From NCBI GenBank assembly GCA_028826165.1, contig JAPDFW010000058.1, positions 62,001 through 126,000 of the forward strand: a DNA stretch of 64,000 nucleotides, given 5' to 3'. Below are positions 14,847-40,769 of this stretch, piece after piece. Below the pieces are notes generated by a model. It had not been told where the DNA came from. It searched no databases and worked only from the letters and a program-made list of their open reading frames with translations. Position 1 is the stretch's first letter; each line of letters starts with the position of its first letter. This DNA comes from Anaeramoeba ignava BMAN (lineage: Eukaryota; Protista; Anaeramoebae). A program made the position numbers and the translations under genes.

Positions 14847-17071
14847 TTAAAAGACTTGATTTCTTCCTTTTTTCTTTTTTCCATATCTCCTTTTAGCAAT
14901 ATTTGGATTTTTTTTAGGAGTTCCAATTTCGACTTTTTGATTTAGATTAATTTTATGTGATTGAAAAAATTCGTGATCTGGATCAAAAAAGTTTGTTTTG
15001 TTGAATTTTTTGTTTTTGTGTTTTCCAAAAGAAGGCATTGTATCTTCAACAAGAATAATTTTTTTTTCGTATCTTCCTCCTTTTGGTTTCGGTAAGGGAT
15101 ATTTTTTGCCTTTTTTAGAAAGAGCTTTTGAGGAAATTTGATGGAAATGCTTTTCTCCATTTTTATCTATATGGAAAGATATTTTTTCCATTGTGTGATT
15201 TCCACAAAAATCGCAGAAAACACGATTCATATCGTTTGATATTCTTTGGCAAGCTGTGCATATCATAGCCCATCTTTTGGTTCTTCTCATTTGGATTCCA
15301 CCAACTGTTAGTAATTTTAAACCCATTTGGAGAAGAACATTTTGCATTGCGAAATCTGTTGTAATGCAAGCAGCTTGTCTTGTGAATTTTGAAGGTGATA
15401 TTTTTTTAGCTTGAATTTGTTTGATATTAGATGGAGTTATCCAATCACCATTAAAGTCATTGAATTTGGGAGTATCTTTTTCTAAATCTTTTTCTAATTC
15501 TTTTTCTAATTCTTTTTCTAAATCTTTTTCTAAATCTTTTTTTGAATCTTTTTTTGAATCTTTTTTTGAATCTTTTTCTAATTCTTTTTCTAATTCTTTT
15601 TTTGAATCTTTTTCTAAATCTTTTTTTGAATCTTTTTTTGAATCTTTTTCTAATTCTTTTTCTAATTCTTTTTTTGAATCTTTTTCTAAATCTTTTTTTG
15701 AATCTTTTTTTGAATCTTTTTCTAAATCTTTTTCTAAATGTTTTTTTGAATCTTTTTCTAAATCTTTTTTTGAATCTTTTTCTAAATCTTTTTCTAAATC
15801 TTTTTCTGAATCTTTTTTTGAATCTTTTTTTGTATCTTTTTCTAAATCTTTTTTTGAATCTTTTTTTGAATCTTTTTTTGAATCTTTTTTTGAATCTTTT
15901 TCTAAATCTTTTTTTGAATCTTTTTCTAAATCTTTTTCTAAATCTTTTTCTAATTCTTTTTCTGAATCTTTTTCTAATTCTTTTTCTAATTCTTTTTCTG
16001 ATTCTTTTTTTGATTCTTTTTCTGAATCTTTTTCTAAATCTTTTTCTGAATCTTTTTCTAAATCTTTTTTTGAATCTTTTTCTAAATCTTTTTCTAAATC
16101 TTTTTCTAAATCTTTTTCTAATTCTTTTTCTAATTCTTTTTTTGAATCTTTTTCTAAATCTTTTTCTGAATCTTTTTTTGAATCTTTTTCTGAATCTTTT
16201 TTTGAATCTTTTTCTGAATCTTTTTTTGAATCTTTTTCTGAATCTTTTTGATTTAATTCTTTTTGATTTAATTCTTTTTGGTTTAATTCTTTTTGATTTA
16301 ATTCTTTTTGATTTGATTCTTTTTGATTTAATTCTTTTTGGTTTGATTCTTTTGGATTTAATTCTTTTTGATTTGATTCTTTTTGATTTAATTCTTTTTG
16401 ATTTGATTCTTTTTGGGTTGATTCTTTTTGATTTGATTCTTTTTGATTTGATTCTAAATTATCAACAAAATCACCATATTCTTTAGGTTCAGTTCTTAAA
16501 TGATTTTTTCCATTTAATTCAATTTCTAATTGCAAAGTTAAAGCTAACACCTTAATATCTGTAGTAGATAAACCAGCAAAATCACCAGTAGATTTAGCAA
16601 AATTAACAACTAAAATCCAAATTAAAATTAAAATTAAAATTAAAATTAAAATTAAAAATTAAAATTAAAATTAAAATTAAAATTAAAATTAAAATTAAAA
16701 TTAAAATTAAAATTAAAATTAAAATTAAAAATTAAAATTAAAATTAAAATTAAAATTAAAATTAAAATTAAAATTAAAATTAAAATTAAAATTAAAATTA
16801 AAATTAAAATTAAAATTAAAATTAAAATTGAAATTAAAATTAAAATTAAAATAAATTAACTTGTTTTAATTGAATCAGGATGAGGTTCTTTAATTTGAAG
16901 AGGAAAAGCTAAAGATTGTAATAAACGTCTTGCTTTTGTATCTTTTATTTCATCTAAAACTTCTTGAACAGTAAAAAGTTGAGATGAAATATTTTCAAGT
17001 TTTACTCCTTGAATAAAAGCACCTGTATCAATAACAACATAATCATCTTTTTCAGGATCTCTTATACTCAT
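14847..17071 (-). CDS. NOB1: 20S pre-rRNA D-site endonuclease NOB1 (PIN + Zn ribbon), 2 exons, large repeat insertion
   Basis: VVIDTGAFI...EVLDEIKD; FAKSTGDFAGLSTTDIKVLALT; GDWITPSNI; ACITTDFAMQNVLLQMGL; CTAC...FCDFCGN; KYPLPKPKGG. Intron 16610-16860. Confidence 0.95.
15475..16455 (-). repeat. Coding 12-nt (EKDS/KKDS/EKDL/EKEL) and 15-nt (NQKES/NQKEL) tandem repeats in NOB1
   Basis: 12-nt period over about 15475-16248 and 15-nt period over about 16248-16455, both in frame. Confidence 0.95.
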
Positions 17072-17160: not shown

Positions 17161-18547
17161 ATGATTTCTCCAAAATTATTTCCTTTAAAATCTTCTTGTT
17201 TAAACCTTCAAACACTTTATCGTTCAATTAATTATAAAGTTCTTGGAGTTGAAAATCAAGTTATTGAAGTGACATTAGAACCTGGTGAAAAAATTCAAGC
17301 AAAGTTCTTATTTTAAAATTAAAATTAAAATTTAAATTAAAATTGAAATTAAAATTAAAATTAAAATCAAATTTAAAATTCATTTATAAAATTATATTTA
17401 AAATTTAAATCAAAATTAAAATTAAAATTAAAATTAAAATTAAAATTAAAATCAAAATTAAAATTAAAATTAAAATCAAAATCAAAATTAATATTATAAT
17501 TAAAATTAAAATTAAAATTAAAATTAAAATTAAAATTAAAAATTAAAATTAAAATTAAAATTAAAATTAAAATTAAAATTAAAATTAAAATTAAAATTAA
17601 AATTAAAATTAAAATTAAAATTAAAATTAAAATCAAAATTAAAATTCATTTTTGAAATTAAAATTAAAATCAAAATTAAAATTAAAATTAAAATTAAAAT
17701 TAAAATTAAAATTAAAATTAAAATTAAAATTAAAATTAAAATCAAAATTAAAATTAAAAATTAAAATTGAAATTAAAATTGAAATTAAAATTAAAATTAA
17801 AATTAAAATTAAAATTAATATTTGAAATTAAAATTCATTTTTGAAATTAAAATTAAAATTAAATTTATAAAATTAAAATTAAAAAGTCCAACATCGATTA
17901 TGTATCAAGATCAAGGAATCGAAGTTTCAACAAAAGCAAAAGGAGGATTTCGAAAATCAATTTCACGAATGTTTATAGGAGAATCATTTCTATTAATGAA
18001 TGCAAAAAACACAACAAACGAAACAAAGAAGTTAATTTTAACAAAAAAATATCCAGGAGAAATATTTCCACTTGAATTAGATGAAAAATCATGGGTGATC
18101 GATCGAGGAACATTTCTTGGGTCAACAACCGACATCGATTTCCAAAGCAAATGGCTCGGATTCAAAATAGGGTTATTCACACGAAAAACACTATCAATTG
18201 AAAAACTAATCAAAACAGATCCACAAAAGAAAAATTCAATTGCTTTTTGCAGTTGTGGTGGATCATCAATAAAACGTCAATTAAAACCTGATGAAAAAAT
18301 CCTCGTTTCTTCTTCCCATCTTGTTGCATTCAACGAATCCGTTAAAATACAAGCAAAATGGATTAAGGGTTTTTGGAATAAATTAGTCGGTTATCGATCT
18401 CTTTTTGAAATATCTTTAACTGGTCCTGGTGACGTTATTTTGCAAACAAATCCTTTTAATGATTTTATGAACTTGATTCAATCAAAAATCGTTACTTATT
18501 CAAATAATTATTATGATTTCGATAAACGCGATGATGATGATTATTAA
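17161..18547 (+). CDS. AIM24-family protein with possible N-terminal organellar presequence, 2 exons
   Basis: YKVLGVENQVIEVTLEPGEKIQA|NPTSIMY...RMFIGESF...YPGEIFPLEL...GGSSIKRQLKPDEKILVSSSHLVAF...LTGPGDVILQT fits the AIM24/TIGR00266 pattern. Intron 17304-17886 is AAAATT-filled. Confidence 0.85.
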
Positions 18548-18630
18548 ATTTTGCTTCTCTTTTCTTTTTTAAAAAAATCCCAAAAATTATTTTCAATTTT
18601 TCATTTTTCATTTTTTTTTTCTTTTCAAAA

Positions 18631-20502
18631 ATGAATGAAATTTTATTTTGTGGTTCAAATCAATATCCAAGACTTATCAAAAATAAACCAGATAAATTAT
18701 CAAAACGAACTCATTTCAAATTTGAAAATCAAAATCAAAATAGAAGCCAAATTAAACAAATTTCATCAAATTTTTTTTCAACAATTTTCCTTTTTGAAAA
18801 TGGAAAAGCAATCGAGCATTTGCAAAATACACATCAAAATCCTCATAAAATCCCAATTGAAAATATTCAAAAAGTATCTGTTGGTTTTCGAAATAAAGCT
18901 ATTTTAACTGCAGATGGAATTGTATTTGCTAAAGGAAAACATTTCAATCCAAATGAATTTATCAATATTTCATCATTAATTGAAGATCCAAATGATAGAA
19001 TAATTGAAGATATTATTTGTTCTTTTAGTTCAATTTACTTATTAACTTCAAATCAAAATGCTTATGGAATTGGTTCAAATCAATATGGCCAACTTGGAAT
19101 TAGTCCTAAAACACTTAGAAAAACACAAAAACCAATTTTAATGATGAAAAATGTTTCTAAAATATTTTCAGGAAATAATTCATATCATGTTTTTCTTTTA
19201 AATTTAAATCAAGAACTATTTGGATGTGGAGATAATGATCATGGCCAACTTGGATTAGGAGAATCAACAAAAGAAGAAGATAAAATCCAAAAATTAACCA
19301 AAATCCAAAATATTCCAAAAGGTAAAATAATTGATATTCAATGTGGTGCGGCTCATTCAATAATGTTAATTGAAAATCAAAATGAAAATCCAAAAAGAAA
19401 ACTTTATTCATGTGGAAATTGTAGATTCAATGGACTTGGCAAAGATGAAGAAGATACTTATGAATTTACTGAAATCAAATCATCTTTATTTGAAAATGAT
19501 GATGATATTATTCTTGGTTTTTCTTGTGGATATGATTTTACTTCAATTTTAACTTCAAATTCAAAAATTATAGCATTTGGAGGTAATGAATTTGGTCAAT
19601 TCGGAATTAAAGATACAAAAAAATATCAATTAGCTCCAATTCAAATTGAACTTCCTAAATTAAGATTTAATCAAAATATTTTCAATTATCATATTTCTTG
19701 TGGATATCAGAATTCATTTGTTTATTATTCTCCTTTTTCTCCTTTTTCCAATCTTGAAGAAGATTTGATAAAATTATTCCAAAGAAAAGAATTTTGTGAT
19801 ATTTCATTTAAAACCAAAAATGAAGAAATAATTGAAGCTCATAAATTAATATTGAAATATAGATTAAAAAATCAAAATCAAATTTCAAAACTTAAAGAAA
19901 TTATTTCAAATAAATCAATTAAAGAATCAAATCAAATATTTGAAATGATTTATTCAAACAAAAAAATAAATCCAAAATTATATTCCGAAATTAAAGAAAT
20001 TATAAATTTAAATGAAAAAATTGAAGAAACAATTAAAAGAATTTATTTAAATGAAAATGAAAATGATTTTATAATTGAAAGAAAAGAAAAACAATATAAA
20101 TTTCCTAAATTAATATTAGCAATGAGAAGTGAATTATATCGAGGAATGTTTTTATCTGTAACAGAAGATACTTCAAATAAAGTTACAGATTATAGTGAAT
20201 TAAGTAATAAATCATTCCAAATATTTGAATATTGGATTTATTCAAATCAAATTAAAAATGAAATTGAAATTACACAAGAAATGATTGATGAAATTCAAAT
20301 TGGAATTGATTATTTTCAATTAAATCAAACAAATCCAAATTTATTTGATTTATTAATTAAGAAATTTAATTATCAAGAAAACAAAAAGGAAATACAAAAA
20401 TTAAAATCAAAAATTTTGTTAAAACAACTTAAGAAAAATAATCCAAAATTCTTAAATTTATTACTTAATCAATTTATTAATCAAAATAAAAATCAAAATT
20501 AA
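18631..20502 (+). CDS. RCC1-like propeller + tandem BTB protein, array copy 1 (intact, 623 aa)
   Basis: RCC1 repeats (GSNQYGQLG, GDNDHGQLGLG, CGAAHS, CGYDFT) and BTB motifs (FCDISF...AHKLILKYRL; FPKLILAMRSELYRGMF). No introns. Confidence 0.9.
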   Translation: MNEILFCGSNQYPRLIKNKPDKLSKRTHFKFENQNQNRSQIKQISSNFFSTIFLFENGKAIEHLQNTHQNPHKIPIENIQKVSVGFRNKAILTADGIVFAKGKHFNPNEFINISSLIEDPNDRIIEDIICSFSSIYLLTSNQNAYGIGSNQYGQLGISPKTLRKTQKPILMMKNVSKIFSGNNSYHVFLLNLNQELFGCGDNDHGQLGLGESTKEEDKIQKLTKIQNIPKGKIIDIQCGAAHSIMLIENQNENPKRKLYSCGNCRFNGLGKDEEDTYEFTEIKSSLFENDDDIILGFSCGYDFTSILTSNSKIIAFGGNEFGQFGIKDTKKYQLAPIQIELPKLRFNQNIFNYHISCGYQNSFVYYSPFSPFSNLEEDLIKLFQRKEFCDISFKTKNEEIIEAHKLILKYRLKNQNQISKLKEIISNKSIKESNQIFEMIYSNKKINPKLYSEIKEIINLNEKIEETIKRIYLNENENDFIIERKEKQYKFPKLILAMRSELYRGMFLSVTEDTSNKVTDYSELSNKSFQIFEYWIYSNQIKNEIEITQEMIDEIQIGIDYFQLNQTNPNLFDLLIKKFNYQENKKEIQKLKSKILLKQLKKNNPKFLNLLLNQFINQNKNQN

Positions 20503-21160
20503 AAATTAAAATCAAAATCAAAAATTAAAATTAAAATTAAAATTAAAATTAAAATTAAAATTAAAATTAAAATTAAAATTAAAATTAAAATTAAAATTAA
20601 AATTAAAATTAAAATTAAAATTAAAATTAAAATTAAAATTAAAATTAAAATTAAAATTCATTTATAAAATTAAAATTAAAATTAAAATTAAAATTAAAAT
20701 TCATTTATATAATTAAAATTAAAATTAAAATTAAAATCAAAATCAAAATCAAAATTAAAATCAAAATTAAAATCAAAATTAAAATTAAAATTAAAATTAA
20801 AATTAAAATTAAAATTAAAATTAAAATTAAAATCAAAATCAAAAATTAAAATTAAAATTAAAATTAAAATTAAAATTAAAATTAAAATTAAAATCAAAAT
20901 CAAAAATTAAAATTAAAATTAAAATTAAAATTAAAATTAAAATTAAATTTAAAATTAAAATCCAAATAAAAATAAAAATTAAAATTAAAATTAAAATTAA
21001 AATTAAAATCAAAATTTAAATTAAAATTAAAATTAAAATTAAAATTAAAAATTAAAATTAAAATTAAAATCAAAATTAAAATCAAAATTAAAATTAAAAT
21101 TAAAATTAAAAATCAAAATTAAAATCAAAATTAAAATTAAAATTAAATTTAAAATTAAAA
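20503..21160. repeat. (AAAATT)n intergenic spacer between array copies 1 and 2
   Basis: Seen directly. Confidence 0.95.
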
Positions 21161-21169
21161 AAATTTTTT

Positions 21170-21207
21170 TTTTCATTTTTTCATTTTTCATTTTTTTCAT
21201 TTCAAAA
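21170..21207 (+). promoter_or_regulatory. Tandem TCATTTT initiator-like elements just upstream of the ATG (example of a window-wide motif)
   Basis: tttcattttttcatttttcatttttttcatttcaaaaATG. The same motif sits in sense orientation before most genes. Confidence 0.55.
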
Positions 21208-24098
21208 ATGAATGAAATTTTATTTTGTGGTTCAAATCATTATCCAAAACTTATCAAAAATAAACCAGATAGATTATCAAAACGAACTCATTTCAAATTT
21301 GAAAATCAAAATCAAAATAGAAGCCAAATTAAACAAATTTCATCAAATTTTTTTTCAACAATTTTCCTTTTTGAAAATGGAAAAGCAATAGAACATTTGC
21401 AAAATTCACATCAAAATCCTCATAAAATCCCAATTGAAAATATTCAAAAAGTATCTGTTAGTTTTCGTAATAAAGCTATTTTAACTGCAGATGGAATTGT
21501 ATTTGCTAAAGGAAAACATTTCAATCCAAATGAATTTATCAATATTTCATCATTAATTGAAGATAAAAATGATAGAGTAATTGAAGATATTATTTGTACT
21601 TTTAAATCAATTTACTTATTAACTTCAAATCAAAATGCTTATGGAACTGGTGCAAATAAAGATGCTCAACTTGGAATTAGTCCTAAAACACTTAGAAAAA
21701 CACAAAAACCAATTTTAATGATGAAAAATGTTTCTAAAATATTTTCAGGAAATAATTCATATCATGTTTTTCTTTTAAATTTAAATCAAGAACTATTTGG
21801 ATGTGGAGATAATGATCATGGCCAACTTGGATTAGGAAAATCAACAAAAGAAAAATGGAAAATCAAAAAATTAACCAAAATCCAAAAAATTCCAAAAGGT
21901 AAAATAATTGATATTCAATGTGGTGGTTCTAATTCACTAATGTTGGTTGAAAATCAAAATCAAAATCCAAAAAGAAAACTTTATTCATGTGGAGTTTATG
22001 AACATAATGGACTTGGCAAAAGATATAAACATACTTATAAATTTACTGAAATCAAATCATCTTTATTTGAAAATGATGATGATATTCTTGATTTTGCTTG
22101 TGGATACTCTTATACTTTGATATTAACAAGAAAAGGGAAACTAATAGGATTTGGGGCTAATGATTTTGGTCAATTAGGAATTAAAGATACAACAAAAACA
22201 CAATCAATTCCTATTCAAATTGAACTTCCTAAATTAAGATTTAATGAAAATATTTCAATTATCATATTCATTCCGGATATACTAAATCATTTCTTTATTA
22301 TTCTCCTTTTTCTCCTTTTTCTAATCTTGAAGAAGATTTGATAAAACTATTTAGAAGAAAAGAATTTTGTGATATTTCATTTAAAACCAAAAATGAAGAA
22401 ATAATTGAAGCTCATAAATTAATATTGAAATATAGATTAAAAGATCAAAATCAAAATCAAATTTCAAAACTTCAAGAAATTATTTCAAAAAAATCAATTA
22501 AAGAATCAAATCAAATATTTGAAATGATTTATTCAAACAAAAAAATAAATCCAAAATTATATTCTGAAATTAAAGAAATTATAAATTCAAATGAAAAAAT
22601 TGAAGAAACAATTAAAAGAATTTATTTAAATGAAAATGAAAAAGATTTTATTATTGAAAGAAAAGAAAAACAATATAAATTTCCAAAATTAATATTAATA
22701 ATGAGAAGTGAATTATATCGAGGAATGTTTTTATCTGTAACAAATGATAAATCTAATAAAGTTACAGATTATAGTGAATTAAGTAATAAATCATTTCAAA
22801 TATTTGAATATTGGATTTATTCAAATCAAATCAAAGAAGAAATTAAAATTACACAAGAAATGATTGATGAAATTAAAATTGGAATTGATTATTTTCAATT
22901 AAATCAAACAAATCCAAATTTATTTGATTTATTAATTAAGAAATTTAATTATCAAGAAAACAAAAAGAAAGAAGAAAATCAAAAATCAAAAATTTTGTTA
23001 AATCAACTCAAGAAAAATAATCCAAATTTCTTAAATTTATTACTTAATCAATTTAATAATAAAAATCAAAATCAAAATCAAAATCAAAATCAAAATATAA
23101 ATCAAAATCAAAATCAAAATCAAAATCAAAATCAAAATCAAAATCAAAATCAAAATCAAAATCAAAATCAAAATCAAATTCAAAATAAAAATCAAAATCA
23201 AAATCAAAATCAAAATCAAAATCCAAATACAAATAAATCACCTTTATTTGGAAATTCAAATCAAAATCCTAATACAAACAAATCACCTTTATTTGGAAAT
23301 TCAAATCAAAATCAAAATACAAATAAATCACCTTTATTTGGAAATTCAAATCAAAATCAAAATGCAAATAAATCACCTTTATTTGGAAATTCAAATCAAA
23401 ATCCAAATACAAATAAATCATCTTTATTTGGAAATCCAAATCAAAATCCTAATATAAGCAAATCATCTTTATTTGGAAATTCAAATCAAAATCCAAATAC
23501 AAATAAATCATCTTTATTTGGAAATTCAAATCAAAATCCAAATACAAACAAATCACCTTTATTTGGAAATTCAAATCAAAATCAAAATACAAATAAATCA
23601 CCTTTATTTGGAAATTCAAATCAAAATCCTAATACAAACAAATCATCTTTATTTGGAAATTCAAATCAAAATCTAAATACAAATAAATCATCTTTATTTG
23701 GAAATACAAATCAAAATCCTAATATAAGCAAATCATCTTTATTTGGAAATTCAAATCAAAATCCAAATACAAACAAATCATCTTTATTTGGAAATTCAAA
23801 TCAAAATCCAAATACAAATAAATCACCTTTATTTGGAAATTCAAATCAAAATCCAAACCAAAATACAAACAAATCATCTTTATTTGAAAATTCAAATCAA
23901 AATCCTAATATAAGCAAATCATCTTTATTTGGAAATTCAAATCAAAATTCAAATACAAATAAATCATCTTTATTTAGAAATTCAAATCAAAATCCTAATA
24001 CAAACAAATCATCTTTATTTGGAAATTCAAATCAAAATTCAAATCTAAGTCAAAATCAAGATCAAAATACAAACAGAACATCTTTATTTGTAAATTAA
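21208..24098 (+). CDS. RCC1-BTB array copy 2 with C-terminal SLFG/PLFG repeat tail; one 1-nt deletion near 22254
   Basis: ORFs 21208-22341 and 22338-24098 together align with copy 1. The break is aatatttcaattat versus aatattttcaattat in copy 1. Confidence 0.85.
23220..24035 (+). repeat. 45-bp coding tandem repeat, 18 copies (NPNTNKS[S/P]LFGNSNQ)
   Basis: Seen directly; 16 units carry FG, one FE and one FR. Confidence 0.95.
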
Positions 24099-24282
24099 AA
24101 TTAAAATTAAAATTAAAATTAAAATTAAAATTAAAATCAAAATTAAAATTAAAATTAAAATTAAAATTAAAATTAAAATTAAAATTAAAATTAAAATTAA
24201 AATTAAAATCAAAATTCCAAAAAAATTTCATTCATTTTCTCATTTTTTTCTTTTCAAAAAAATTTAAAAAAAAAAAAAGAGA

Positions 24283-26403
24283 ATGAACGAAATTTTATTT
24301 TGTGGTCAAAATCAATATCCAAAACTTATCAAAAATAAACCAGATAAATTATCAAAACGAACTCAATTTAAATTTGAAAATCAAAATCAAAACAGAAATC
24401 AAATTAAACAAATTTCATCTGGTTTATTTTCAACAATTTTCCTTTTTGAAAATGGAAAAGCAATTGAACATTTGCAAAATACACATCAAAATCCTCATAA
24501 AATCCCAATTGAAAATATTCAAAAAGTATCTGTTGGTTATCATAATAAAGCTATTTTAACATTAGAAGGAAATGTATTTGCTAAAGGAAAACATTTCAAT
24601 CCAAATGAATTTATCAATATTTCATCATTAATTGAAGATAAAAATGATAGAGTAATTGAAGATATTATTTGTACTTTTAAATCAATTTATTTATTAACCT
24701 CAAATCAAAATGCTTATGGAACTGGTGCAAATAAAGATGCTCAACTTGGAATTAGTCCTAAAACACTTAGAAAAACACAAAAACCAATTTTAATGATGAA
24801 AAATGTTTCTAAAATATTTTCAGGAAATAATTCATATCATGTTTTTCTTTTAAATTTAAATCAAGAACTATTTGGATGTGGAGATAATGATAATAGTCAA
24901 GTTGGATTAGGAGAATCAACAAAAGAAAAATGGAAAATCAAAAAATTAACCAAAATCCAAAATATTCCAAAAGGCAAAATAATTGATATTCAATGTGGAG
25001 CTTCTCATTCAATAATGTTGATTGAAAATCAAAATGAAAATCCAAAAAGAAAACTTTATTCATGTGGAGATTATAGATTCAATGGACTTGGCAAAGATGA
25101 AGAAGATACTTATGAATTTACTGAAATCAAATCATCTTTATTTGAAAATGATGATGATAATATTCTTGGTTTTTCTTGTGGATATGATTTTACTTCAATT
25201 TTAACTTCACATTCAAAAATTATAGCATTTGGAGGTAATGAATTTGGTCAATTCGGAATTAAAGATACAAAAAAATATCAATTAACTCCAATTCAAATTG
25301 AACTTCCCAAATTAAGATTTAATGAAAATATTTTTAATTATCATATTTCTTGTGGATATCAGAATTCATTTGTTTATTATTCTCCTTTTTCTCCTTTTTC
25401 TAATCTTGAAGAAGATTTGATAAAACTATTTAGAAGAAAAGAATTTTGTGATATTTCATTTAAAACCAAAAATGAAGAAATAATTGAAGCTCATAAATTA
25501 ATATTAAAATATAGATTAAATCAAAATGAAAATGAAAATCAAAATCAAATTGAAAAACTTCAAAAAATTATTTCAAAAAAATCAACTAAAGAATCAAATC
25601 AAATATTTGAAATGATTTATTCAAACAAAAAAATAAATCCAAAATTATATTCTGAAATTAAAGAAATTATAAATTTAAATGAAAAAATTGAAGAAACAAT
25701 TAAAAGAATTTATTTAAATGAAAATGAAAATGAAAAAGATTTTATAATTGAAAGAAAAGAAAAACAATATAAATTTCCAAAATTAATATTAGCAATGAGA
25801 AGTGAATTATATCGAGGAATGTTTTTATCTGTAACAGAAGATACTTCTAATAAAGTTACAGATTATAGTGAATTAAGTAATAAATCATTCCAAATATTTG
25901 AATATTGGATTTATTCAAATCAAATTAAAGAAGAAATTGAAATTACACAAGAAATGATTGATGAAATTAAAACTGGAATTGATTATTTTCAATTAAATCA
26001 AACAAATCCAAATTTATTTGATTTATTAATTAATAAATTTAATTATCAAAATCAAGATTTACATGAAATTTCTGATGAAAGTGAAGATTCATTTCAAAAT
26101 GATAATTATAGTGACAATGATAATGATAATGATAGTGATAGTGATAGTGATAGTGATAGTGATCTAGAATACGAATCAATGATTTTTAATTTATTTCTTA
26201 AAGAACTTGAAAATCAATATCGAAATTTCAATCTAATGTCATTTCAAAATTCAAAACCAAAACCAAAACCAAAATCAAAACCAAAATCAAAACCAAAACC
26301 AAAATCAAATCAAAAACCAAAACCAAAACCAAAACCAAAACCAAAACAAAATCCACAACCAAAACCAAAACGAAAACCAAAAAAAAGACCAAGAAAAAAA
26401 TAA
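24283..26403 (+). CDS. RCC1-BTB array copy 3 (intact, 706 aa) with acidic + KP-rich/NLS-like tail
   Basis: Same architecture as copy 1; tail DSDSDSD...KPKPKPK...KRKPKKRPRKK. Confidence 0.9.
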   Translation: MNEILFCGQNQYPKLIKNKPDKLSKRTQFKFENQNQNRNQIKQISSGLFSTIFLFENGKAIEHLQNTHQNPHKIPIENIQKVSVGYHNKAILTLEGNVFAKGKHFNPNEFINISSLIEDKNDRVIEDIICTFKSIYLLTSNQNAYGTGANKDAQLGISPKTLRKTQKPILMMKNVSKIFSGNNSYHVFLLNLNQELFGCGDNDNSQVGLGESTKEKWKIKKLTKIQNIPKGKIIDIQCGASHSIMLIENQNENPKRKLYSCGDYRFNGLGKDEEDTYEFTEIKSSLFENDDDNILGFSCGYDFTSILTSHSKIIAFGGNEFGQFGIKDTKKYQLTPIQIELPKLRFNENIFNYHISCGYQNSFVYYSPFSPFSNLEEDLIKLFRRKEFCDISFKTKNEEIIEAHKLILKYRLNQNENENQNQIEKLQKIISKKSTKESNQIFEMIYSNKKINPKLYSEIKEIINLNEKIEETIKRIYLNENENEKDFIIERKEKQYKFPKLILAMRSELYRGMFLSVTEDTSNKVTDYSELSNKSFQIFEYWIYSNQIKEEIEITQEMIDEIKTGIDYFQLNQTNPNLFDLLINKFNYQNQDLHEISDESEDSFQNDNYSDNDNDNDSDSDSDSDSDLEYESMIFNLFLKELENQYRNFNLMSFQNSKPKPKPKSKPKSKPKPKSNQKPKPKPKPKPKQNPQPKPKRKPKKRPRKK

Positions 26404-26538
26404 TGGAAATTCAAGTACAAATTCAAATTCACAATCAAATCAAAATTCAAAAACAAAACCAAAATTTTTTCTTTTCAGTTTTTTTTTTCATTTTTTTCTT
26501 TTTCAAAAAATTAATAAAAGAAAAATAAAAAAAAGAGA

Positions 26539-28317
26539 ATGAATGATTGTTTATTTTTTGGTTCGAATCAATTCCCAAAACTTTTCAAAAATAAACCAGA
26601 AAAAATAACAAAACCAATTCAATTTAAATTTGAAAATGAAAATGAAAATGAAAATGAAAAACAAATTAAACAAATTTCATCAGGTTTATTTTCAACAATT
26701 TTCCTTTTTGAAAATGGAAAAGCAATAGAATATTTAAATGAAAATGATTCAAATCAAAATCCTCAAAAAATCCCAATTGAAAATATTCAAAAAGTATCTG
26801 TTGGTTATGATAATGAAGCTATTTTAACAAAAGAAGGAAATGTATTTGCAAAAGGAAAAAATATTAATTCAAAAAATCCAAAAGAATTTATCAATATTTC
26901 ATCATTAATTGAAGATACAAATGATAGAATAATTCAAGATGTTGTTTCTGGAAATCGCTCAATTTACTTATTAACTTCAAATCACAATGCTTATGGAATT
27001 GGTTCAAATGATTATTGTCAACTTGGTTTCGATTCTGAAACACTTAAAGAAACAGAAAAACCAATTTTAATGATGAAAAATGTTTCTATAATATTTTCAG
27101 GAAACAATTCATATCATGTTTTTATTTTAAATTTAAATCAAGAATTATTTGGATGTGGTGATAATCAATTTGTTCAACTTGGATTAGGAAAATCAAGAAA
27201 AGAAGCAAAAATCTATAAATTAACTCAAAATCCAAAATATTCCAAAAGGTGAAATAATTGATATTCAATTTGGACGTGCTTTTTCAATAATGTTGATTGA
27301 AGATGAAGCTGAAAATCCAAATCCAAAAAGAAAACTTTATTCATGTGGTGATTATCGATTAAATGGACTTGGCAAGAATCAAAGAATTTGTGAATTTACT
27401 GAAATCAAATCACCTTTATTTGAAAATGATGATTATATTCTTGATTTTTCTGTTGGAAATGCGCATACTTTGATTTTAACTTCTAATTCAAAATTAATTG
27501 GATTTGGTTTTAATTTCTTTAGTCAATTAGGAACTGGAGATACAAATTATCGATCAATTCCAATTCAAATTGAACTTCCTAAATTAAGATTTAATGAAGA
27601 TATTTCTAATTATCATATTCTTTGTGGAAATAACAAATCGTTTCTTTATTATTCTCCTCTTTCTTCCAATCTTGAAGAAGATTTGATAAAATTATTTAGA
27701 AGAAAAGAATTTTGTGATATTTCATTTAAAACCAAAAATGGAGAAATAATTGAAGCTCATAAATTAATATTGAAATATAGATTAAATCAAAATCAAAATC
27801 AAATTGAAAACTTAAAGAAATTATTTCAAATAAATCAATTAAAGAATCAAATCAAATATTTGAAATGATTTATTCAAACAATTCCAAAATAAATCCAAAA
27901 TTATATTCAGAAATCAAAGAAATTATAAATTCAAATGAAAGAATAGAAGAAACAATGAAAAGAATTTATTTAAATGAAAATGAAAATGAAAATGAAAAAG
28001 ATTTTATAATTGAAAGAAAAGAAAAACAATATAAATTTCCAAAATTAATATTAATAATGAGAAGTGAATTATATCGAGGAATGTTTTTATCTGTAACAGA
28101 AGATAAATCTAATAAAGTTACAGATTATAGTGAATTAAGTAATAAATCATTTCAAATATTTGAATATTGGATTTATTCAAATCAAATTAAAGATGAAATT
28201 CAAATTACACAAGAAATAATTGAAGAATTAGAAACTGGAATTGATTATTTTCAATTAAATCAAACAAATCCAAATTTATTTGATTTATTAATTAACAAAT
28301 TTAATAATCAAAATTAA
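26539..28317 (+). CDS. RCC1-BTB array copy 4; two frameshifts (about 27227 and 27808), either assembly error or pseudogene
   Basis: Three ORF pieces are colinear with the intact copies; both indels are in A runs. Confidence 0.8.
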
Positions 28318-28451
28318 AATTCATTTATAAAATTGAAATTAAAATTAAAATTAAAATTAAAATTAAAATTAAAATTAAAATTAAAATCAAAATTAAAATT
28401 AAAAAGCAAAAATAATTTTTTTCATTTTTTTCATTTTTTTTCTTTTCAAAA

Positions 28452-30210
28452 ATGAATGATTGTTTATTTTTTGGTTCAAATCAAAAACCAAATGAACTCA
28501 TCAAAAATGACGAAGATAGAATAACAAAACCAATTCAATTTAAATTTAAATTTAAATTTGAAAATGAAAATGAAAAACAAATTAAACAAATTTCATCATC
28601 AAATTTTTCAACAATTTTCCTTTTTAAAAATGGAAAAGCAATAGAATATTTACTGGAATATTTCAGAGTTTCAAAAAAAAATCCTGTAGAAATCCCAATT
28701 GAAAATATTCAAAAAGTAGTTGCTGGTGGTCTAAATGAAGCTATTTTAACTGCAGAAGGAAATTTATTTGGCAAAGGAAAAGATATGAATCCAAAAAATC
28801 CAAAAGAATTTATCAATATTTCATCATTAATTGAAGATCCAAATGATAAAATAATTGAAGATATTGCTCCTGGATGGGATTCTTTTTATTTATTAACTTC
28901 AAATCAAATGTTTATGGAATTGGTACAAATCAATATTGTCAACTTGGCTTAGATTTTAAAACATTTAAAAAAACACAAAAACCAATTTTAATGATGAAAA
29001 ATGTTTCTAAAATATTTTCAGGAACTGATTCAAGACATGTTTTTCTTTTAAATTCAAATCAAGAATTATTTGGATGTGGAGATAATTCACGTGGTCAACT
29101 TGGATTAGGAAAATCAAGAAAAGAAACAAAAATCCAAAAATTAACCAAAATCCAAAATATTCCAAAAGACAAAATAATTGATATTCAATGTGGAAATGAA
29201 CATTCAATAATGTTGATTGAAGATGAAAATGAAACAAGAAAGCTTTATTCATGTGGAGACCATCGTCATAATGGACTTGGCAAGAATCAAAGAACTTGTG
29301 AATTTACTGAAATCAAATCATCTTTATTTGAAAATGATTATATTCTTGATTTTTCTGTTGGATTTAATCATACTTTGATATTAACAAGAAAAGGGAAATT
29401 AATTGGATTTGGTTTAAATTTTTGGTGTCAATTAGGAACTGGAACTATAACTGATGAAAAAATTCCAATTCAAATTGAACTTCCTAAATTAAGATTTAAA
29501 GAAGATATTTCCAATTATCATGTTCTTTGTAGAAGTGATAAATCATTTCTTTATTATTCTCCTCCTTCTTTTTCCAATCTTGAAGAAGATTTGATAAAAT
29601 TATTCCAAAGAAAAGAATTTTGTAATATTTCATTTAAAACCAAAAATGGAGAAATAATTGAAGCTCATAAATTAATATTGAAATATAGATTAAAAGATGA
29701 AAATCAAATTAAAAAACTTCGAAAAATTATTTCAAAAAAATCAATTAAAGAATCAAATCAAATATTTGAAATGATTTATTCAAATAATTCCAAAGTAAAT
29801 CCAAAATTATATTCTGAAATTAAAGAAATTATAAATTCAAATGAAAAAATTGAAGAAACAATGAAAAGAATTTATTTAAATGAAAATGAAAATGATTTTA
29901 TAATTGAAAGAAAAGAAAAAAAATATAAATTTCCAAAATTAATATTAATAATGAGAAGTGAATTATATCGAGGAATGTTTTTATCTGTAACAAATGATAC
30001 TTCTAATAAAGTCAAAGATTATAGTGAATTAAGTAATAAATCATTCAAATATTTGAATATTGGATTTATTCAAATCAAATTAAAGAAGATATTGAAATTA
30101 CAAAAGAAATGATTGATGAAATTAAAATTGGAATTGATTATTTTCAATTAAATCAAACAAATCCAAATTTATTTGATTTATTAATTAAGAAATTTAATAA
30201 TCAAAATTAA
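28452..30210 (+). CDS. RCC1-BTB array copy 5; two frameshifts (about 28905 and 30045)
   Basis: Colinear with the paralogues; ends LLIKKFNNQN* in the restored frame. Confidence 0.8.
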
Positions 30211-31472
30211 AATTAAAATTAAAATTAAAATTAAAATCAAAATTAAAATCAAAATTAAAAAAATTAAAATTTAAAAATTAAAATCAAAATTAAAATTAAA
30301 ATCAAAATTAAAATTAAAATTAAAATTAAAATTAAAATTAAAATTAAAATTAAAATTAAAATCTAAAATTAAAATTAAAATTAAAATTAAAATTAAAATT
30401 AAAATCAAAATTAAAATTAAAATTAAAATTAAAATCAAAATTAAAAATCAAAATTAAAATTAAATCAAAAAAATTAAAATTAAAATTAAAATTAAAATTA
30501 AAATTAAAATTAAAATTAAAATTAAAATTAAAATTAAAATTAAAATTAAAATTAAAAATTAAAATCAAAATTAAAATTAAAATTAAAATCAAAATTAAAA
30601 TCAAAAATTAAAATTAAAATTAAAATTAAAATTAAAATTAAAATTAAAATTAAAATTAAAATTAAAATTAAAATTAAAATCAAAATTAAAATTAAAATTA
30701 AAAATCAAAATTAAAATTAAAATTAAAATTAAAATTAAAATTAAAATTAAAATTAAAATTAAAATTAAAATTAAAATTAAAATTAAAATTAAAATTAAAA
30801 TTAAAATTAAAATTAAAATTAAAATTAAAATTAAAATTAAAATTAAAATTAAAATTAAAATTAAAATTAAAATCAAAATTAAAATTAAAATCAAAAATTA
30901 AAATTAAAATCAAAAATTAAAATTAAAATCAAAATTAAAATTAAAATTAAAAATTAAAATTAAAATTAAAATTAAAAATTAAAATTAAAATTAAAATTAA
31001 AATTAAAATTAAAATTAAAATTAAAATTAAAATTAAAAATTAAAATTAAAATTAAAATTAAAATTAAAATTAAAATTAAAAATTAAAATTAAAATTAAAA
31101 TTAAAATTAAAATCAAAATTAAAATTAAAATTAAAATTAAAATTAAAATTAAAATTAAAATTAAAATTAAAATTAAAATTAAAATTAAAATTAAAATTAA
31201 AATTAAAATTAAAATTAAAATTAAAATTAAAATTAAAATTAAAATTAAAATTAAAATTAAAAATTAAAATCAAAATTAAAATTAAAATTAAAATTAAAAT
31301 TAAAATTAAAATTAAAATTAAAATTAAAATTAAAATTAAAATTAAAATTAAAATTAAAATTAAAATTAAAATTAAAATTAAAATTCAAAATTAAAATTAA
31401 AATTAAAATCAAAAATTAAAATTAAAATCAAAATTAAAATTAAAATCAAAATTAAAATCAAAATAAAAATTA
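30211..31472. repeat. (AAAATT)n intergenic spacer between array copies 5 and 6
   Basis: About 1.26 kb of near-pure hexamer. Confidence 0.95.
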
Positions 31473-31504
31473 AAAATATTTTTTTCATTTTTTCTTTTTC
31501 AAAA

Positions 31505-33371
31505 ATGAATGAAATTTTATTTTGTGGTTCAAATAAATATCCAAAACTTATCAAAAATAAACCAGAGAGATTATCAAAACGAACTCGATTTAAATTTGAA
31601 AATGAAAATGAAAACAGAAGCCAAATTAAACAAATTTCATCAGGAGGTTATGTTTCAACAATTTTCCTTTTTGAAAACGGAAAAGCAATAGAATATTCAC
31701 AAGATTCATATCAAAATCCTCAAAAAATCCCAATTGAAAATATTCAAAAAGTATCTGTTGGCTATCGTGACAAAGCTATTTTAACTGCAGATGGGATTGT
31801 ATTTGCTAAAGGAAAACATTCCGATCCAAAAGAATTTATAAATATTTCATCATTAATTGAAGATAAAAATGATAGAGTAATTGAAGATATTATTTGTTCT
31901 TTTAGTTCAATTTACTTATTAACTTCAAATCAAAATGCTTATGGAATTGGTTCAAATAGAGATGGTCAACTTGGTTTTGATTCTGAAAAACTTAGAAAAA
32001 CACAAAAACCAATTTTAATGATGAAAAATGTTTCTAAAATATTTTCAGGAAATTCTTCTTATTATGTTTTTCTTTTAAATTCAAATCAAGAATTATTTGT
32101 ATGCGGATATAATGATTCTGGTCAAGTTGGATTAGGAAAATCAACAAAAGAAACAAAAATCCAAAAATTAACCCAAATCCAAAATATTCCAAAAGGCAAA
32201 ATAATTGATATTAAATGTGGAGCTTCTCATTCACTAATGTTGGTTCGAAAATCAAAATGAAAATCCAAAAAGAAAACTTTATTCATGTGGTCATTATTTA
32301 TTTACTGGACATGGCAAAGAAGATGAAGATACTTATGAATTTACTGAAATCAAATCATCTTTATTTGAAAATGATAATATTCTTGATTTTTCTTGTGGAT
32401 ATGATTTTACTTCAATTTTAACTTCCAAACCAAAAATTATAGCATTTGGAGGTAATGAGCATGGTCAATTCGGAGTTAGAAATACAACAAGATATCAATT
32501 AACTCCAATTCAAATTGAACTTCCTAAATTAAGATTTAATCGAAATATTTCCAATTATCATCTTTCTTGTGGATATCAGAATTCATTTGTTTATTATTCT
32601 CCTTTTTCTCCTTTTTCCAATCTTGAAGAAGATTTGATAAAACTATTTAGAAGAAAAGAATTTTGTGATATTTCATTTAAAACCAAAAATGAAGAAATAA
32701 TTGAAGCTCATAAATTAATATTGAAATATAGATTAAAAGATCAAAATCAAATTGAAAAACTTAAAGAAATTATTTCAAAAAAATCAATTAAAGAATCAAA
32801 TCAAATATTTGAAATGATTTATTCAAACAAACAAATAAATCCAAAATTATATTCCGAAATTAAAGAAATTATAAATTCAAATGAAAAAATTGAAGAAACA
32901 ATTAAAAGAATTTATTTAAATGAAAATGAAAATGAAAATGATTTTATAATTGAAAGAAAAGAAAAACAATATAAATTTCCAAAATTAATATTAATAATGA
33001 GAAGTGAATTATATCGAGGAATGTTTTTATCTGTAACAAATGATACTTCTAATAAAGTTACAGATTATAGTGAATTAAGTAATAAATCATTTCAAATATT
33101 TGAATATTGGATTTATTCAAATCAAATTAAAAATGAAATTGAAATTACACAAGAAATTATTGATGAAATTCAAATTGGAATTGATTATTTTCAATTAAAT
33201 CAAACAAATCCAAATTTATTTGATTTATTAATTAAGAAATTTAATTATCAAGAAAACAAAAAGGAAATACAAAAATTAAAATCAAAAATTTTGTTAAAAC
33301 AACTTAAGAAAAATAATCCAAATTTCTTAAATTTATTACTTAATCAATTTATTAATCAAAATCAAAATTAA
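31505..33371 (+). CDS. RCC1-BTB array copy 6; one 1-nt insertion (C at about 32246)
   Basis: ttggttCgaaaatcaa versus ttggttgaaaatcaa in copy 2. The rest is colinear, and the tail is nearly identical to copy 1. Confidence 0.8.
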
Positions 33372-33677
33372 AATTAAAATAATTAAAATTAAAATTAAAA
33401 TTAAAATTAAAATTAAAATTAAATTAGAAATCAGAAAATAAAATTAAAATTAAAATTAAAATCAAAATTAAAATAAAAATTAAAATTAAAATCAAAATCA
33501 AAAATTAAAATTAAAATTAAAATTAAAATTCAAAATTAAAATCAAAATTAAAATCAAAATTAAAATCAAATTAAAATCAAAATTAAAATTAAAATCAAAA
33601 TTAAAATTAAAATTAAAATTAAAATTAAAATCAAAATTTAGATTTTTTTCATTTTTTTCATTTTTTTCTTTTCAAAA

Positions 33678-35477
33678 ATGAATGATTGTTTATTTTGGGG
33701 TGAAAATGAATATCCAAAACTTATCAAAAAACAACCATTTCTAATAACAAAACCAATTCAATTTAAATTTGAAAATGAAAATGAAAATGAAAATGAAAAA
33801 CAAATTAAACAAATTTCAACAGGAGATAATTCAACAATTTTCCTTTTTAAAAATGGAAAAGCAATAGAATACTTAAATGAAAATGATTCAAATCAAAATC
33901 CTTCAAAAATCCAAATTGAAAATATTCAAAAAGTAACTGTTGGTTTTCGAAATGAAGCTATTTTAACAATAGAAGGAAATGTATTTGCCAAAGGAAGAGA
34001 TATTAATTCAAATAACCCAAATGAATTTATCAATATTTCATCATTAATTGAAGATACAAATGATAGAATAATTCAAGATATTGTTTCTGGAAATCGCTCA
34101 ATTTACTTATTAACTTCAAATCAAAATGCTTATGGAATTGGTTCAAATCAATTTTGTCAAGTTGGTTTTGATTCTAAAATACTTCCAAAAACAGAAAAAC
34201 CAATTTTAATGATGAAAAATGTTTCTAAAATATTTTCAGGAATTTCTTCACTTCATGTTTTTATTTTAAATTCAAATCAAGAATTATTTGTATGTGGAAA
34301 TAATGAATATGATCAACTTGGATTAGGAGAATCAAGAAAATATGAACAAATCAAAAATTAACCAAAATCCAAAATATTCCAAAAGGCAAAATAATTGATA
34401 TTAAATGCGGAAGCATTCATTCAATAATGTTGATTGAAGATCAAAATGAATATGAAAACGAATATGAAGATGAAAATCCAAAAAGAAAACTTTATTCATG
34501 TGGAGATTATGAAACTAATGGACTTGGAAAATATGGAAATACTTATGAATTTACTGAAATCAAATCATCTTTATTTGAAAATGATGATAATATTATTGAT
34601 TTTTCTGTTGGATATAAACATACTTTGATTTTAACTTCCAAAGGGAAATTGATAGTATTTGGAAGAAATCATTTTGGTCAATTAGGAACTGGAGATACAA
34701 AAGATCATAGAGTGCCAATTCAAATTGAACTTCCTAAATTAAGATTTAATGAAGATATTTCTAATTATCATATTTCTTGTGGAAATTATAGTTCATTTCT
34801 TTATTATTCTCCTTGTTCTTTTTCTAATCTTGAAGAAGATTTGATAAAATTATTTGAAAGAAAAGAATTTTGTGATATTTCATTTAAAACCAAAAATGAA
34901 GAAATAATTGAAGCTCATAAATTAATATTAAAATATAGATTAAATCAAAATGAAAATCAAATTAATCAACTTGAAGAAATTCTTTTACAAAAATCAATTA
35001 AAGAATCAAATCAAATATTTGAAATGATTTATTCAAATAATTCCAAAGTAAATCCAAAATTATATTCTGAAATTAAAGAAATTATAAACTCAAATGAAAA
35101 AATTGAAGAAACAATGAAAAGAATTTATTTAAATGAAAATGAAAATGAAAATGAAAAAGATTTTATAATTGAAAGAAAAGAAAAACAATATAAATTTCCT
35201 AAATCAATATTGATAATGAGAAGTGAATTATATCGAGGAATGTTTTTATCTGTAACAGAAGATAAATCTAATAAAGTTACAGATTATAGTGAACTAAGTA
35301 ATAAATCATTTCAAATATTTGAATATTGGATTTATTCAAATCAAATTAAAAGATGAAATTCAAATTACACAAGAAATTATTAATGAAATTGAAATTGGAA
35401 TTGATTATTTTCAATTAAATCAAACAAATCCAAATTTATTTGATTTATTAATTAACAAATTTAATAATCAAAATTAA
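33678..35477 (+). CDS. RCC1-BTB array copy 7; two frameshifts (about 34353 and 35350)
   Basis: Colinear with the paralogues; ends LLINKFNNQN*. Confidence 0.8.
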
Positions 35478-39743: not shown

Positions 39744-40769
39744 TTAAAAATCAGTTAATAATTTTTGATCCAAAAAATCTCTCAAATCACAAATAATTTC
39801 TTGTTCAAAACCAAAATCCCAAATTTCATCGTAAGTAAGAGTATTTTCATATTGACCACCAAAAAGAAAGAAATGAGAACGAGAATAAGCACAACCAACA
39901 CTTCCGAAACGAGCAGAAGGAAAAAGAGAAGGATTTTGAGGGAAATCATATAAAAACCATTCTTTTTTTTTCAAGTCAAAATAACGCAATTTATTAGAAT
40001 ATCTGTCTCGCCAAGAAAAACCGCCAAAACAAACAACATATTGATTTTCATAGATGACAGAAACATGACCCCCAAATGCCGGCAAATCAAAAATAGGGTG
40101 AATTTTGCTCCATTCAAAAGTGTTTAAGTTGAATAAATAAATTTCACAATTTTCAATTTTGGATTCATCAAGACCCCCAACTATCATTAGATTATCTTCG
40201 TAAATATGGCAAGTGTGAGAAGATCTTGCTTTTGGAATTTCGCCAATTGATGGGATTTCTTCCCATTTTTTTTGCAGAGTGTTGAATCTCCAGAGATCGT
40301 TTTTGCGCGATCCTTCATTAGAAAATCCTCCAAAAAGATAAATAAATCCATTGTGATAAATTGCGGAATGCGAATATCTTCCGCTTGGTTTCTTTTCATG
40401 ACCCGCAAATTCAATTTTAGTCCATTGATTTAAATTTGTATCAAATTCCCACAAATCATCATAATATTCATTTTCCATATTTCCTCCAAAAATCCATATT
40501 TTATTCTTGAACCCTGTCATTGAGTGTGCAGAACGAATACTGGGTTGTTTATTTTGATCCGGTTTGATTTGTTCCCATTTGTTATTTTGGAGATCAAATG
40601 AGAACAACTGGTTTGATTCTTGTGTTGGATTTAATTTATTTCCTCCAAAAATATAAATTTTATGTTGATCTGAATCGAAAAATATTCCCGATTTTGCAAC
40701 TTCCATTGGTTTTTCTTCTGTAATTGAATTAACTGTTTCCATCCAATAAATTTTTATTTGATTTTTCAT
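39744..40769 (-). CDS. Kelch-repeat beta-propeller protein; ends at what looks like the start of a BTB domain
   Basis: Repeated RSAHS/RYSHS/RSSHT...(I/L)FGG...DLW.F...W Kelch motifs; C-terminus DLRDFLDQKLLTDF*. Confidence 0.85.
   Translation of the reverse strand: MKNQIKIYWMETVNSITEEKPMEVAKSGIFFDSDQHKIYIFGGNKLNPTQESNQLFSFDLQNNKWEQIKPDQNKQPSIRSAHSMTGFKNKIWIFGGNMENEYYDDLWEFDTNLNQWTKIEFAGHEKKPSGRYSHSAIYHNGFIYLFGGFSNEGSRKNDLWRFNTLQKKWEEIPSIGEIPKARSSHTCHIYEDNLMIVGGLDESKIENCEIYLFNLNTFEWSKIHPIFDLPAFGGHVSVIYENQYVVCFGGFSWRDRYSNKLRYFDLKKKEWFLYDFPQNPSLFPSARFGSVGCAYSRSHFFLFGGQYENTLTYDEIWDFGFEQEIICDLRDFLDQKLLTDF

Follow-up and report, generated by a model that had tools for sequence, protein, structure and literature searches.

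The 64,000-nucleotide stretch of DNA from the anaerobic amoeba Anaeramoeba ignava BMAN considered here (positions 62,001 to 126,000 of contig JAPDFW010000058.1, assembly GCA_028826165.1; hereafter the window) contains a tandem array of seven genes, each encoding an RCC1-like seven-bladed propeller followed by two BTB domains. The array belongs to a family of about 1,200 copies, the members of which share a nearly uniform scaffold and differ from one another at 40 hypervariable positions, placed by a structural model on a single face of the propeller. These sites are under diversifying selection, and the scaffold and the BTB domains are under purifying selection. The favoured reading, which is considered moderately probable, is that this RCC1-like/BTB/BTB family of some 1,200 members, specific to A. 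ignava, constitutes a germline-encoded repertoire of binding specificities. The variable face would bind many different protein ligands, either endogenous ones or foreign ones from symbionts, prey or viruses. The constant BTB tail would link all of these specificities to a single common effector, with a Cullin-3 RING ligase as the likeliest candidate, and by analogy with RCBTB1 and IBTK the bound ligands would be ubiquitinated.

A tblastn search with copy 1 as query recovers seven collinear paralogues on the + strand across 18631-35477. The genes have no introns, and the G+C content of the window is about 20%. Pfam assigns RCC1-like repeats (PF25390, PF00415 and PF13540) and two BTB stretches (PF00651) to the array proteins. 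Copy 1 scores 227.9 bits for PF25390 (cut-off 150), 75.8 for PF00415 and 70.7 for PF13540; copy 3 is above the cut-off for PF00415 and PF13540, and its PF25390 score of 132 bits is under the cut-off of 150. The BTB matches score 37.2 and 42.5 bits, compared to a cut-off of 20.5, and there are two BTB stretches per protein. The architecture is best described in copy 1, an intact open reading frame (ORF) of 623 amino acids (aa; 18631..20502, +), in which the propeller spans aa 1-366 (18631-19728), BTB1 about aa 376-470 (19756-20040) and BTB2 about aa 478-567 (20062-20331), followed by C-terminal helices. A preliminary description of this DNA had recognised the seven-gene RCC1/BTB array, and this is borne out. 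The motif strings that it gave for the repeats of the seven copies are reproduced exactly after frame correction, in 49 of 49 cases. Its seven genes are indeed seven copies, but five of them are frameshifted in the assembly and had been read through without comment; the array itself is real, but its scope had been understated, as it is just one of the arrays formed by some 1,200 family copies.

The variation between copies is concentrated at a limited number of positions. When copy 1 is aligned with 111 paralogues (112 proteins), column entropy averages 0.70 bits over the propeller and 0.22 bits over the BTB part, with spikes of 2-3.6 bits at about 13 patches, two per blade. The preliminary description had counted seven such patches. 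The spikes coincide with the x-x of a G-x-x-[H/N]-[S/T] motif, the x of G-x-N-x-x-G-Q, and a few residues at the far end of the latter loop. Positions with a column entropy of at least 2 bits were defined as hypervariable. There are 40, which in the numbering of copy 1 are residues 9, 11, 12, 21, 22, 48, 65, 72, 86, 87, 103, 132 and 133, residues 151, 152, 163, 183, 185, 201, 203, 204, 217, 218, 240 and 241, and residues 263, 265, 266, 272, 273, 301, 302, 318, 320, 321, 330, 331, 334, 359 and 360. Mean pairwise identity among the 112 proteins is 0.207 at these sites, compared to 0.912 in the scaffold and 0.925 in the BTB part, and the 40-residue signature is distinct in each of the proteins (112/112). 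The same holds within the window, where pairwise amino acid identity among the seven copies rises from 0.295 at the hypervariable sites to 0.795 elsewhere in the propeller and 0.907 in the BTB part, in agreement with the earlier claim of a near-constant scaffold and BTB region set against variable positions. At least three different residues occur among the seven copies in 37 of the 40 hypervariable columns, versus 56 of the 545 others (Fisher p=1.5e-29). An architecture of variable and constant regions, as the preliminary description had proposed, is thus recovered as 40 hypervariable sites on a uniform scaffold and BTB part.

The composition of these sites is unusual as well. Tyr makes up 18.7% of the residues at hypervariable sites and 2.9% of those in the scaffold (a 6.4-fold difference); Trp, Arg, His and Asp are also enriched, and Ile, Leu, Gly, Pro and Met are depleted. 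Judged by residue content, this resembles a protein-binding paratope. Hypermutation of the type caused by diversity-generating retroelements, or targeted to adenines, was considered and dropped, as all residue types occur and synonymous single-base changes are not in excess in the hypervariable codons.

An AlphaFold2 model of the propeller (predicted local distance difference test score, pLDDT, 88) allows 28 strands to be assigned to blades 1-7. It shows seven four-stranded blades, with the N-terminal strand 4-9 acting as strand D of blade 7 and closing the propeller. The best Foldseek matches include the RCC1-like domains of HERC2 (4l1m), RCC1 (1a12) and RPGR (4jhn), with TMt values of 0.72-0.82. 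Faces were assigned topologically, by loop parity on the modelled secondary structure, since successive antiparallel loops alternate between the two faces. By this assignment the B-C and D-A loops contain 33 of the 40 hypervariable sites, and the A-B and C-D loops contain none (Fisher p=1.5e-10). The other seven adjoin the B-C and D-A loops; each of them ends a D strand or stands within the opening residues of an A strand. The A-B and C-D loop positions of the opposite face have a mean entropy of 0.30 bits and contain no hypervariable site. In the model, the 40 hypervariable sites are therefore all located on one propeller face, so that they are confined by loop parity and not scattered. In a HMMER alignment, sites 240/241, 301/302 and 359/360 correspond to the Trp-Arg of three GWRHT motifs of UVR8, residues that form the dimer-interface face of that protein. 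RCC1, the exchange factor of Ran, has just 17-18% identity to the propeller, and the face positions corresponding to those of RCC1 are the hypervariable ones here, which argues against one conserved GTPase partner.

Selection was assessed in several ways. Nei-Gojobori proportions over 35 copies give a proportion of synonymous differences (pS) of 0.295 and of nonsynonymous differences (pN) of 0.502 at hypervariable codons, compared to 0.100 and 0.049 in the propeller scaffold and 0.083 and 0.038 in the BTB part. With the MG+F3X4 model of IQ-TREE on a fixed tree, omega is 1.94 for the hypervariable and 1.97 for an intermediate partition, and 0.29 and 0.26 for scaffold and BTB, respectively; tree length is 53 substitutions per codon for the hypervariable partition versus about 3. 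An omega of 1 is rejected for the hypervariable partition, at a cost of 8.4 log units (likelihood-ratio test statistic 16.9). In 28 phylogenetically independent nearest pairs from 57 intact copies, dN/dS at hypervariable codons is 2.13 (bootstrap confidence interval, CI, 1.78-2.56), and the ratio of hypervariable dN to scaffold dS is 7.0 (CI 5.7-8.5). The cleanest test, which is pathway-free, considers only codon pairs that differ by one base. It yields 284 nonsynonymous and 14 synonymous differences at hypervariable codons, where 21% synonymous would be expected (p=9e-16; implied omega ~5.4), and 588 nonsynonymous and 456 synonymous differences in the scaffold (omega about 0.44). Finally, a home-made site test picks out 21 positions, every one in the propeller and none in the BTB domains, at which nonsynonymous change is 3-64 times as fast as the synonymous rate of the whole gene (p<0.001). 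Sites with dN/dS above 1, which the preliminary description had expected, are thus present: by the IQ-TREE model, the nearest pairs and the single-base count, omega is 1.94-5.4 at hypervariable codons, versus 0.26 in the BTB part by the IQ-TREE model and 0.26-0.44 for scaffold and BTB together.

The family is large and is found in tandem arrays with a spacing of ~2 kb on many contigs. The best 120 database matches are all A. ignava proteins of about 590 aa, with 73-83% identity. A whole-genome search returned 2,738 first-look candidates, and all 71 that were scored had E values below 1e-268. For copy counting, two 30-mers were used as markers. The first covers the codons of SELYRGMFLSV in BTB2, is identical in 35 of 35 copies and has 1,257 matches with at most two mismatches in the 42.8 Mb assembly; the second, from the propeller, has 1,154 matches with at most three mismatches. 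The reversed controls gave 0 matches in both cases. The family thus comprises about 1,200 copies, which at ~1.8 kb each amounts to roughly 5% of the assembly.

From a search of 1.84 billion cluster representatives, 30 relatives with identities as low as 28% were looked up, and 29 of these are from A. ignava, the exception being an A. flamelloides protein with about 31-35% identity. Since nearly all of the relatives looked up are from A. ignava, the expansion is specific to this lineage. Besides the arrayed family, A. ignava has divergent RCC1-BTB singletons (28-48% identity), some of which carry an armadillo-type N-terminal extension. Family members bear automatic NCBI names such as 'btk-binding protein-related' and 'RCC1 and BTB domain-containing protein'. 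RCC1, BTB and ubiquitin are not mentioned in the main text of the genome paper (PMC11550330), and the available part of its supplement lists just a small BTB family and cullins (PMC11550330). As locus tags run to ~14,800, ~8% of the A. ignava gene models belong to one family that the main text of that paper leaves unnamed. Many of these models are fragmented by frameshifts, which is of practical concern. Metagenome runs from hydrothermal vents, microbial mats and marine sediments contain 7-14% of the 31-mers sampled from copies 4-5 (26500-30180); these may derive from environmental relatives of Anaeramoeba, or they may merely be shared AT-rich words.

The tree of the non-hypervariable sites is star-like, and the only supported groups consist of physically neighbouring copies. 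In the window these are copies 1, 2, 3 and 6 on the one hand and copies 4 and 5 on the other, with copy 7 apart. Copy 2 is a recombinant mosaic, built of tracts that resemble copy 1 and tracts that resemble copy 3 (max-chi2 p=0.002). A PHI-like four-gamete test was uninformative, as 32% of the site pairs are incompatible at every distance, which is what recurrent changes on a star tree are expected to give. Within two codons of hypervariable sites, synonymous codon diversity is ~2 times the amino-acid-matched expectation (0.110 vs 0.058). This could fit sheltered old variants, short conversion tracts or multi-base mutation. The family expands and is reshuffled by tandem duplication and by recombination or gene conversion between neighbouring copies, with unequal exchange probably taking place at the microsatellite spacers. 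Combined with diversifying selection on the face, these processes explain the pattern.

Another explanation would dispense with adaptive diversification altogether: exposed loops would drift neutrally in an AT-biased genome, and gene conversion would homogenise the scaffold. The mosaic structure of copy 2, the BTB2 30-mer that is invariant in 35 copies and recurs ~1,257 times in the genome, the doubled synonymous diversity near hypervariable sites, and the weakness of one of the site tests described below are all in line with it. Drift does not explain, however, why synonymous differences are so scarce among the single-base changes (14 against 284 nonsynonymous, with 21% expected) or why an omega of 1 is rejected. 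Neither does it explain the conservation of the equally loop-borne A-B and C-D positions of the other face, at 0.30 bits and without a hypervariable site. Moreover, AT-driven drift would favour Ile, Leu, Lys, Asn, Phe and Tyr alike, whereas the observed sites are rich in Tyr and poor in Ile and Leu. Neutral drift is therefore regarded as the most improbable of the explanations weighed here.

The constant part of the favoured reading concerns the BTB tail. BTB2 shows a weak alignment (E 8e-4) to the BTB domain of the CUL3 adaptor KBTBD4, and a link to CUL3 is on record for RCBTB1 (PMC4974088). The A. ignava genome contains about eight cullin loci, with matches at C64:573176-574954, C71:407769-409535, C71:672181-674421 and C74:55148-56887 and on C58, C109 and C57. 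The position in BTB2 that corresponds to the Cul3-contacting phi-x-E motif of the alpha3-beta4 loop (aa 510-512 of copy 1; 20158-20166, +) reads V-T-E in 71 of the 112 proteins (63%) and V-T-D in 3 of 112. Coupling of the tail to Cul3 is predicted from family resemblance, and the chances for and against it are judged to be about even.

A subset of the family has an additional C-terminal feature. Of 113 full-length members, 19 (17%) end in a polybasic stretch followed by CLIF, CSIF or CFIF, i.e., a CaaX box; P0010, P0011, P0013, P0025 and P0026 are among them. The tail occurs in none of the seven window copies. Judged by this motif, the subset would be prenylated and membrane-anchored, with the polybasic CaaX tail holding 17% of the repertoire at membranes. 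Such a tail is also what is seen in small GTPases, and it invites a different, non-degradative role in membrane traffic. The face would then bind Rab, Arf or Rho GTPases, as an exchange factor or scaffold, the BTB domains would only oligomerise, and the diversity would track endogenous paralogues at the symbiosome or phagosome and not foreign targets. Binding of small GTPases by this very face is classical for RCC1-like domains, and the RCC1-Ran complex (1i2m) is among the top fold matches. In addition, Anaeramoeba has large Rab/TBC expansions (PMC11550330), and one annotated model (P0037) fuses a family member to a Ras/Rho domain. However, about 1,200 copies with 112 distinct signatures in 112 proteins far exceed any plausible number of endogenous GTPases, and a face omega of about 2-5 in a young radiation with a star-like tree is what antagonistic or non-self recognition typically produces, in contrast to coevolution with conserved partners. 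Furthermore, among the relatives looked up the family is absent from A. flamelloides, although the trafficking expansions are larger in that species. A role in GTPase binding is consequently deemed unlikely.

A number of observations count against a functional, selected and cullin-coupled repertoire. When the synonymous rate is left free for each site, only 7 sites remain at p<0.05; this version of the test is weak, since one saturated codon says little about its own synonymous rate. A codon grid with fixed branch lengths gives a beta/alpha of 0.5 for the saturated, pooled hypervariable partition, which is read as a saturation artefact because the pathway-free single-base count contradicts it. 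At the phi-x-E position, 32 of 112 proteins (29%) have V-T-N, with Asn in place of Glu, and copies 2, 5 and 6 of the window belong to this group; judged by sequence, the V-T-E/V-T-N dimorphism could mark two functional classes. As for intactness, 53 full-length copies were sampled from the window and 17 other array stretches on the basis of marker matches, with intactness disregarded, and 22 of these lack an intact ORF. At least two of the 53 carry genuine stop codons, so some real pseudogenes exist. Lastly, none of the 214 family matches listed (120 full-length and 94 fragments) is a transcriptome-derived (EukProt) A. ignava protein, whereas four of the more divergent A. ignava RCC1-BTB singletons do have EukProt transcript entries. 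The lack of EukProt members is weak evidence, as it may reflect either low expression in culture or a failure of transcript assembly on ~1,200 near-identical genes.

The last three observations would also be expected if the family were mostly dead or selfish amplified DNA, i.e., a recent tandem burst that is largely pseudogenised and untranscribed. The window itself seems to suggest this at first, as only copies 1 and 3 have uninterrupted ORFs and copies 2, 4, 5, 6 and 7 are frameshifted by 1, 2, 2, 1 and 2 single-base indels, respectively. All eight indels lie inside short homopolymers. They are a deletion at 22255 (T4 to T3) in copy 2, an insertion near 27229 and a deletion at 27805 in copy 4, deletions at 28905 (A4 to A3) and 30043 in copy 5, an insertion near 32248 in copy 6, and a deletion at 34351 and an insertion near 35343 in copy 7. 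When the indels alone are removed, copies 4-7 yield frames of 586-621 aa that end in ...NKFNNQN, the usual terminus of the family, and contain no in-frame stop, although these copies differ from copy 1 at 13-25% of their residues and a single mutation suffices to create a stop codon in this genome. The public model P0007 (586 aa) has both termini of copy 6 and is 35 aa shorter, presumably because it skips the frameshift of that copy via an artificial intron.

The quality of the assembly bears on these breaks. It was built from Nanopore R9.4 reads with ABruijn, and Pilon is cited (PMC11550330). The window also contains midasin (MDN1; 45936-63096, -), a single-copy and presumably essential gene encoding about 5,700 aa, which is cut into four long ORFs. 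Its frame switches at an A9 run near 53929-53937, at A5/A7 runs near 47750-47790 and at a GAAAAT repeat near 57697, and no intron signals were found at these switches. The midasin breaks are probably homopolymer indel errors of the Nanopore-based assembly. Because this single-copy gene of the same window is broken likewise, it is likely that most frameshifts in the array copies are assembly errors too. Of the 53 sampled copies, 31 retain an ORF of 560 aa or more at a genomic GC content of 20%, and the broken ones mostly have one or two frame switches. The window copies are disrupted by single-base homopolymer indels alone, without a nonsense codon, and scaffold and BTB domains evolve at an omega of 0.26-0.44. 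Despite the 5 broken copies out of 7, the few real stops and the lack of EukProt members among the matches listed, dead DNA is considered very unlikely as an account of the family as a whole.

If the germline-encoded repertoire is accepted, a more specific picture can tentatively be drawn, although it is possible rather than probable. The family would be an 'antibody-like' library of ~1,200 intracellular receptors taking up ~5% of the genome, each with a unique Tyr-rich paratope on a constant stalk that docks to a ubiquitin ligase. It would serve the cell-autonomous surveillance of proteins from sulfate-reducing symbionts, prey bacteria or viruses, and be renewed by short-tract gene conversion between arrays, amounting to an immune repertoire of a protist with an RCC1 fold as its basis. 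Recognition could also be directed at conspecifics: the family would then be an allorecognition or kin-discrimination repertoire for polymorphic proteins of the same species, like the fungal het-d/het-e NLRs with their hypervariable top-face residues on WD40 propellers. Its evolutionary signature is that of the HNWD family of Podospora, namely a conserved repeat scaffold, inter-locus exchange and few selected surface positions per blade (PMC1805685). Known allorecognition systems consist of few, highly allelic loci and not of ~1,200 paralogues, however, and no cell fusion or sex is known in A. ignava, for which the data come from one strain. This explanation is accordingly given little credence. 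The repertoire of binding specificities, if expressed and coupled to cullin, would be among the largest and cleanest known receptor families with a variable face and a constant stalk in a unicellular eukaryote, and a diversified repertoire on an RCC1-like propeller was not found in the literature searched. How a free-living protist with symbionts distinguishes proteins in its own cytoplasm would then become accessible to experiment. In practice, copy-specific faces on an identical scaffold are well suited to pull-downs, display libraries and structural work.

The remaining copies and their surroundings are as follows, all copies being on the + strand. Copy 2 (21208..24098) is split into ORFs 21208-22341 and 22338-24098 and carries a tail of ~18 copies of a 45-nt repeat encoding NQNPNTNKSSLFGNS (23213-24044). 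This repeat tail lies in the continued reading frame, is FG-nucleoporin-like and is lacking in the other copies. Copy 3 (24283..26403) is an intact ORF of 706 aa, with a C-terminal extension (26050-26403) composed of an acidic Asp/Ser/Asn stretch and subsequent Lys-Pro repeats (KPKPKSKPK...), ending in KRPRKK; the extension resembles a nuclear-localisation or polybasic tail. The corrected frames are 592 aa for copy 4 (26539..28317; ending in ...NKFNNQN), 586 aa for copy 5 (28452..30210), 621 aa for copy 6 (31505..33371) and 599 aa for copy 7 (33678..35477). Copy 5 is the most divergent of the array, with 74-80% identity to the other copies. The copies are separated by (AATTAA)n microsatellites, with one such spacer at 20479..21160 and similar ones at 30190-31475 and 33354-33638, where unequal crossing-over is likely to occur. 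A conserved T-rich leader of ~35 nt (TTTTTCATTTTTTCATTTTTTTCTTTTCAAAA) directly precedes the ATG of copy 1 (18596..18630, +) and is found before copies 1, 2, 5, 6 and 7. In copies 3 and 4, the upstream region ends in ...AAAAAAGAGA in place of the common leader.

The array is flanked by ordinary genes, encoding a UCH deubiquitinase, NOB1, AIM24 and a Kelch-propeller protein (jointly 7211-8830 (+), 14847-16550 (-), 17822-18547 (+) and 39744-40769 (-)), and therefore sits in normal host chromatin and not in a mobile island. A viral or transposon origin was dropped, given the host composition and the position of the arrays among housekeeping genes (UCH, NOB1, AIM24 and midasin). A different RCC1-repeat gene, with 33% identity to copy 1 over 218 aa, is located at 44407-44994 (-).

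A parallel in organisation is provided by the MATH-BTB and F-box adaptor expansions of nematodes and plants, reportedly described by Thomas in 2006 in Genome Res 16:1017, a paper to which PMC8120010 and PMC3030570 refer. Like the A. ignava family, these are large, lineage-specific tandem families in which the substrate-binding domain shows site-specific positive selection. They also combine it with a constant cullin-docking domain, which in A. ignava is predicted, and have been proposed to act in the intracellular surveillance of foreign proteins. Unlike in those families, the variable module in A. ignava is an RCC1-like propeller and not a MATH, FTH or FBA domain, and the paralogues are far more uniform (~91-93% identity outside the 40 sites) and occupy ~5% of the genome. 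In domain order, the family resembles RCBTB1/RCBTB2 and IBTK, in which an RCC1-like propeller also precedes one or more BTB domains, but these are single-copy conserved genes without hypervariability. The divergent RCC1-BTB singletons of A. ignava are more plausible counterparts of RCBTB1/2 and IBTK. UVR8, RCC1, HERC2 and RPGR (8gqe, 1a12, 4l1m and 4jhn) share the same seven-bladed fold (Foldseek E about 1e-23), and in UVR8 the Trp-Arg of the GWRHT motifs lines up with pairs of hypervariable B-C loop residues; identity to these proteins is only 17-20%, however, and they have no BTB tail. In its pattern of variation, the family is similar to the HNWD/het-d/het-e genes of Podospora anserina, where a propeller likewise has few hypervariable, selected residues per blade on its interaction face, a near-identical remainder and exchange between loci (PMC1805685, PMC2873952). 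There, the propeller is of the WD40 type and the diversity resides among the repeats and alleles of ~10 genes with a NACHT effector, whereas in A. ignava the propeller is RCC1-like and the diversity is distributed over ~1,200 whole-gene paralogues with a BTB-BTB tail.

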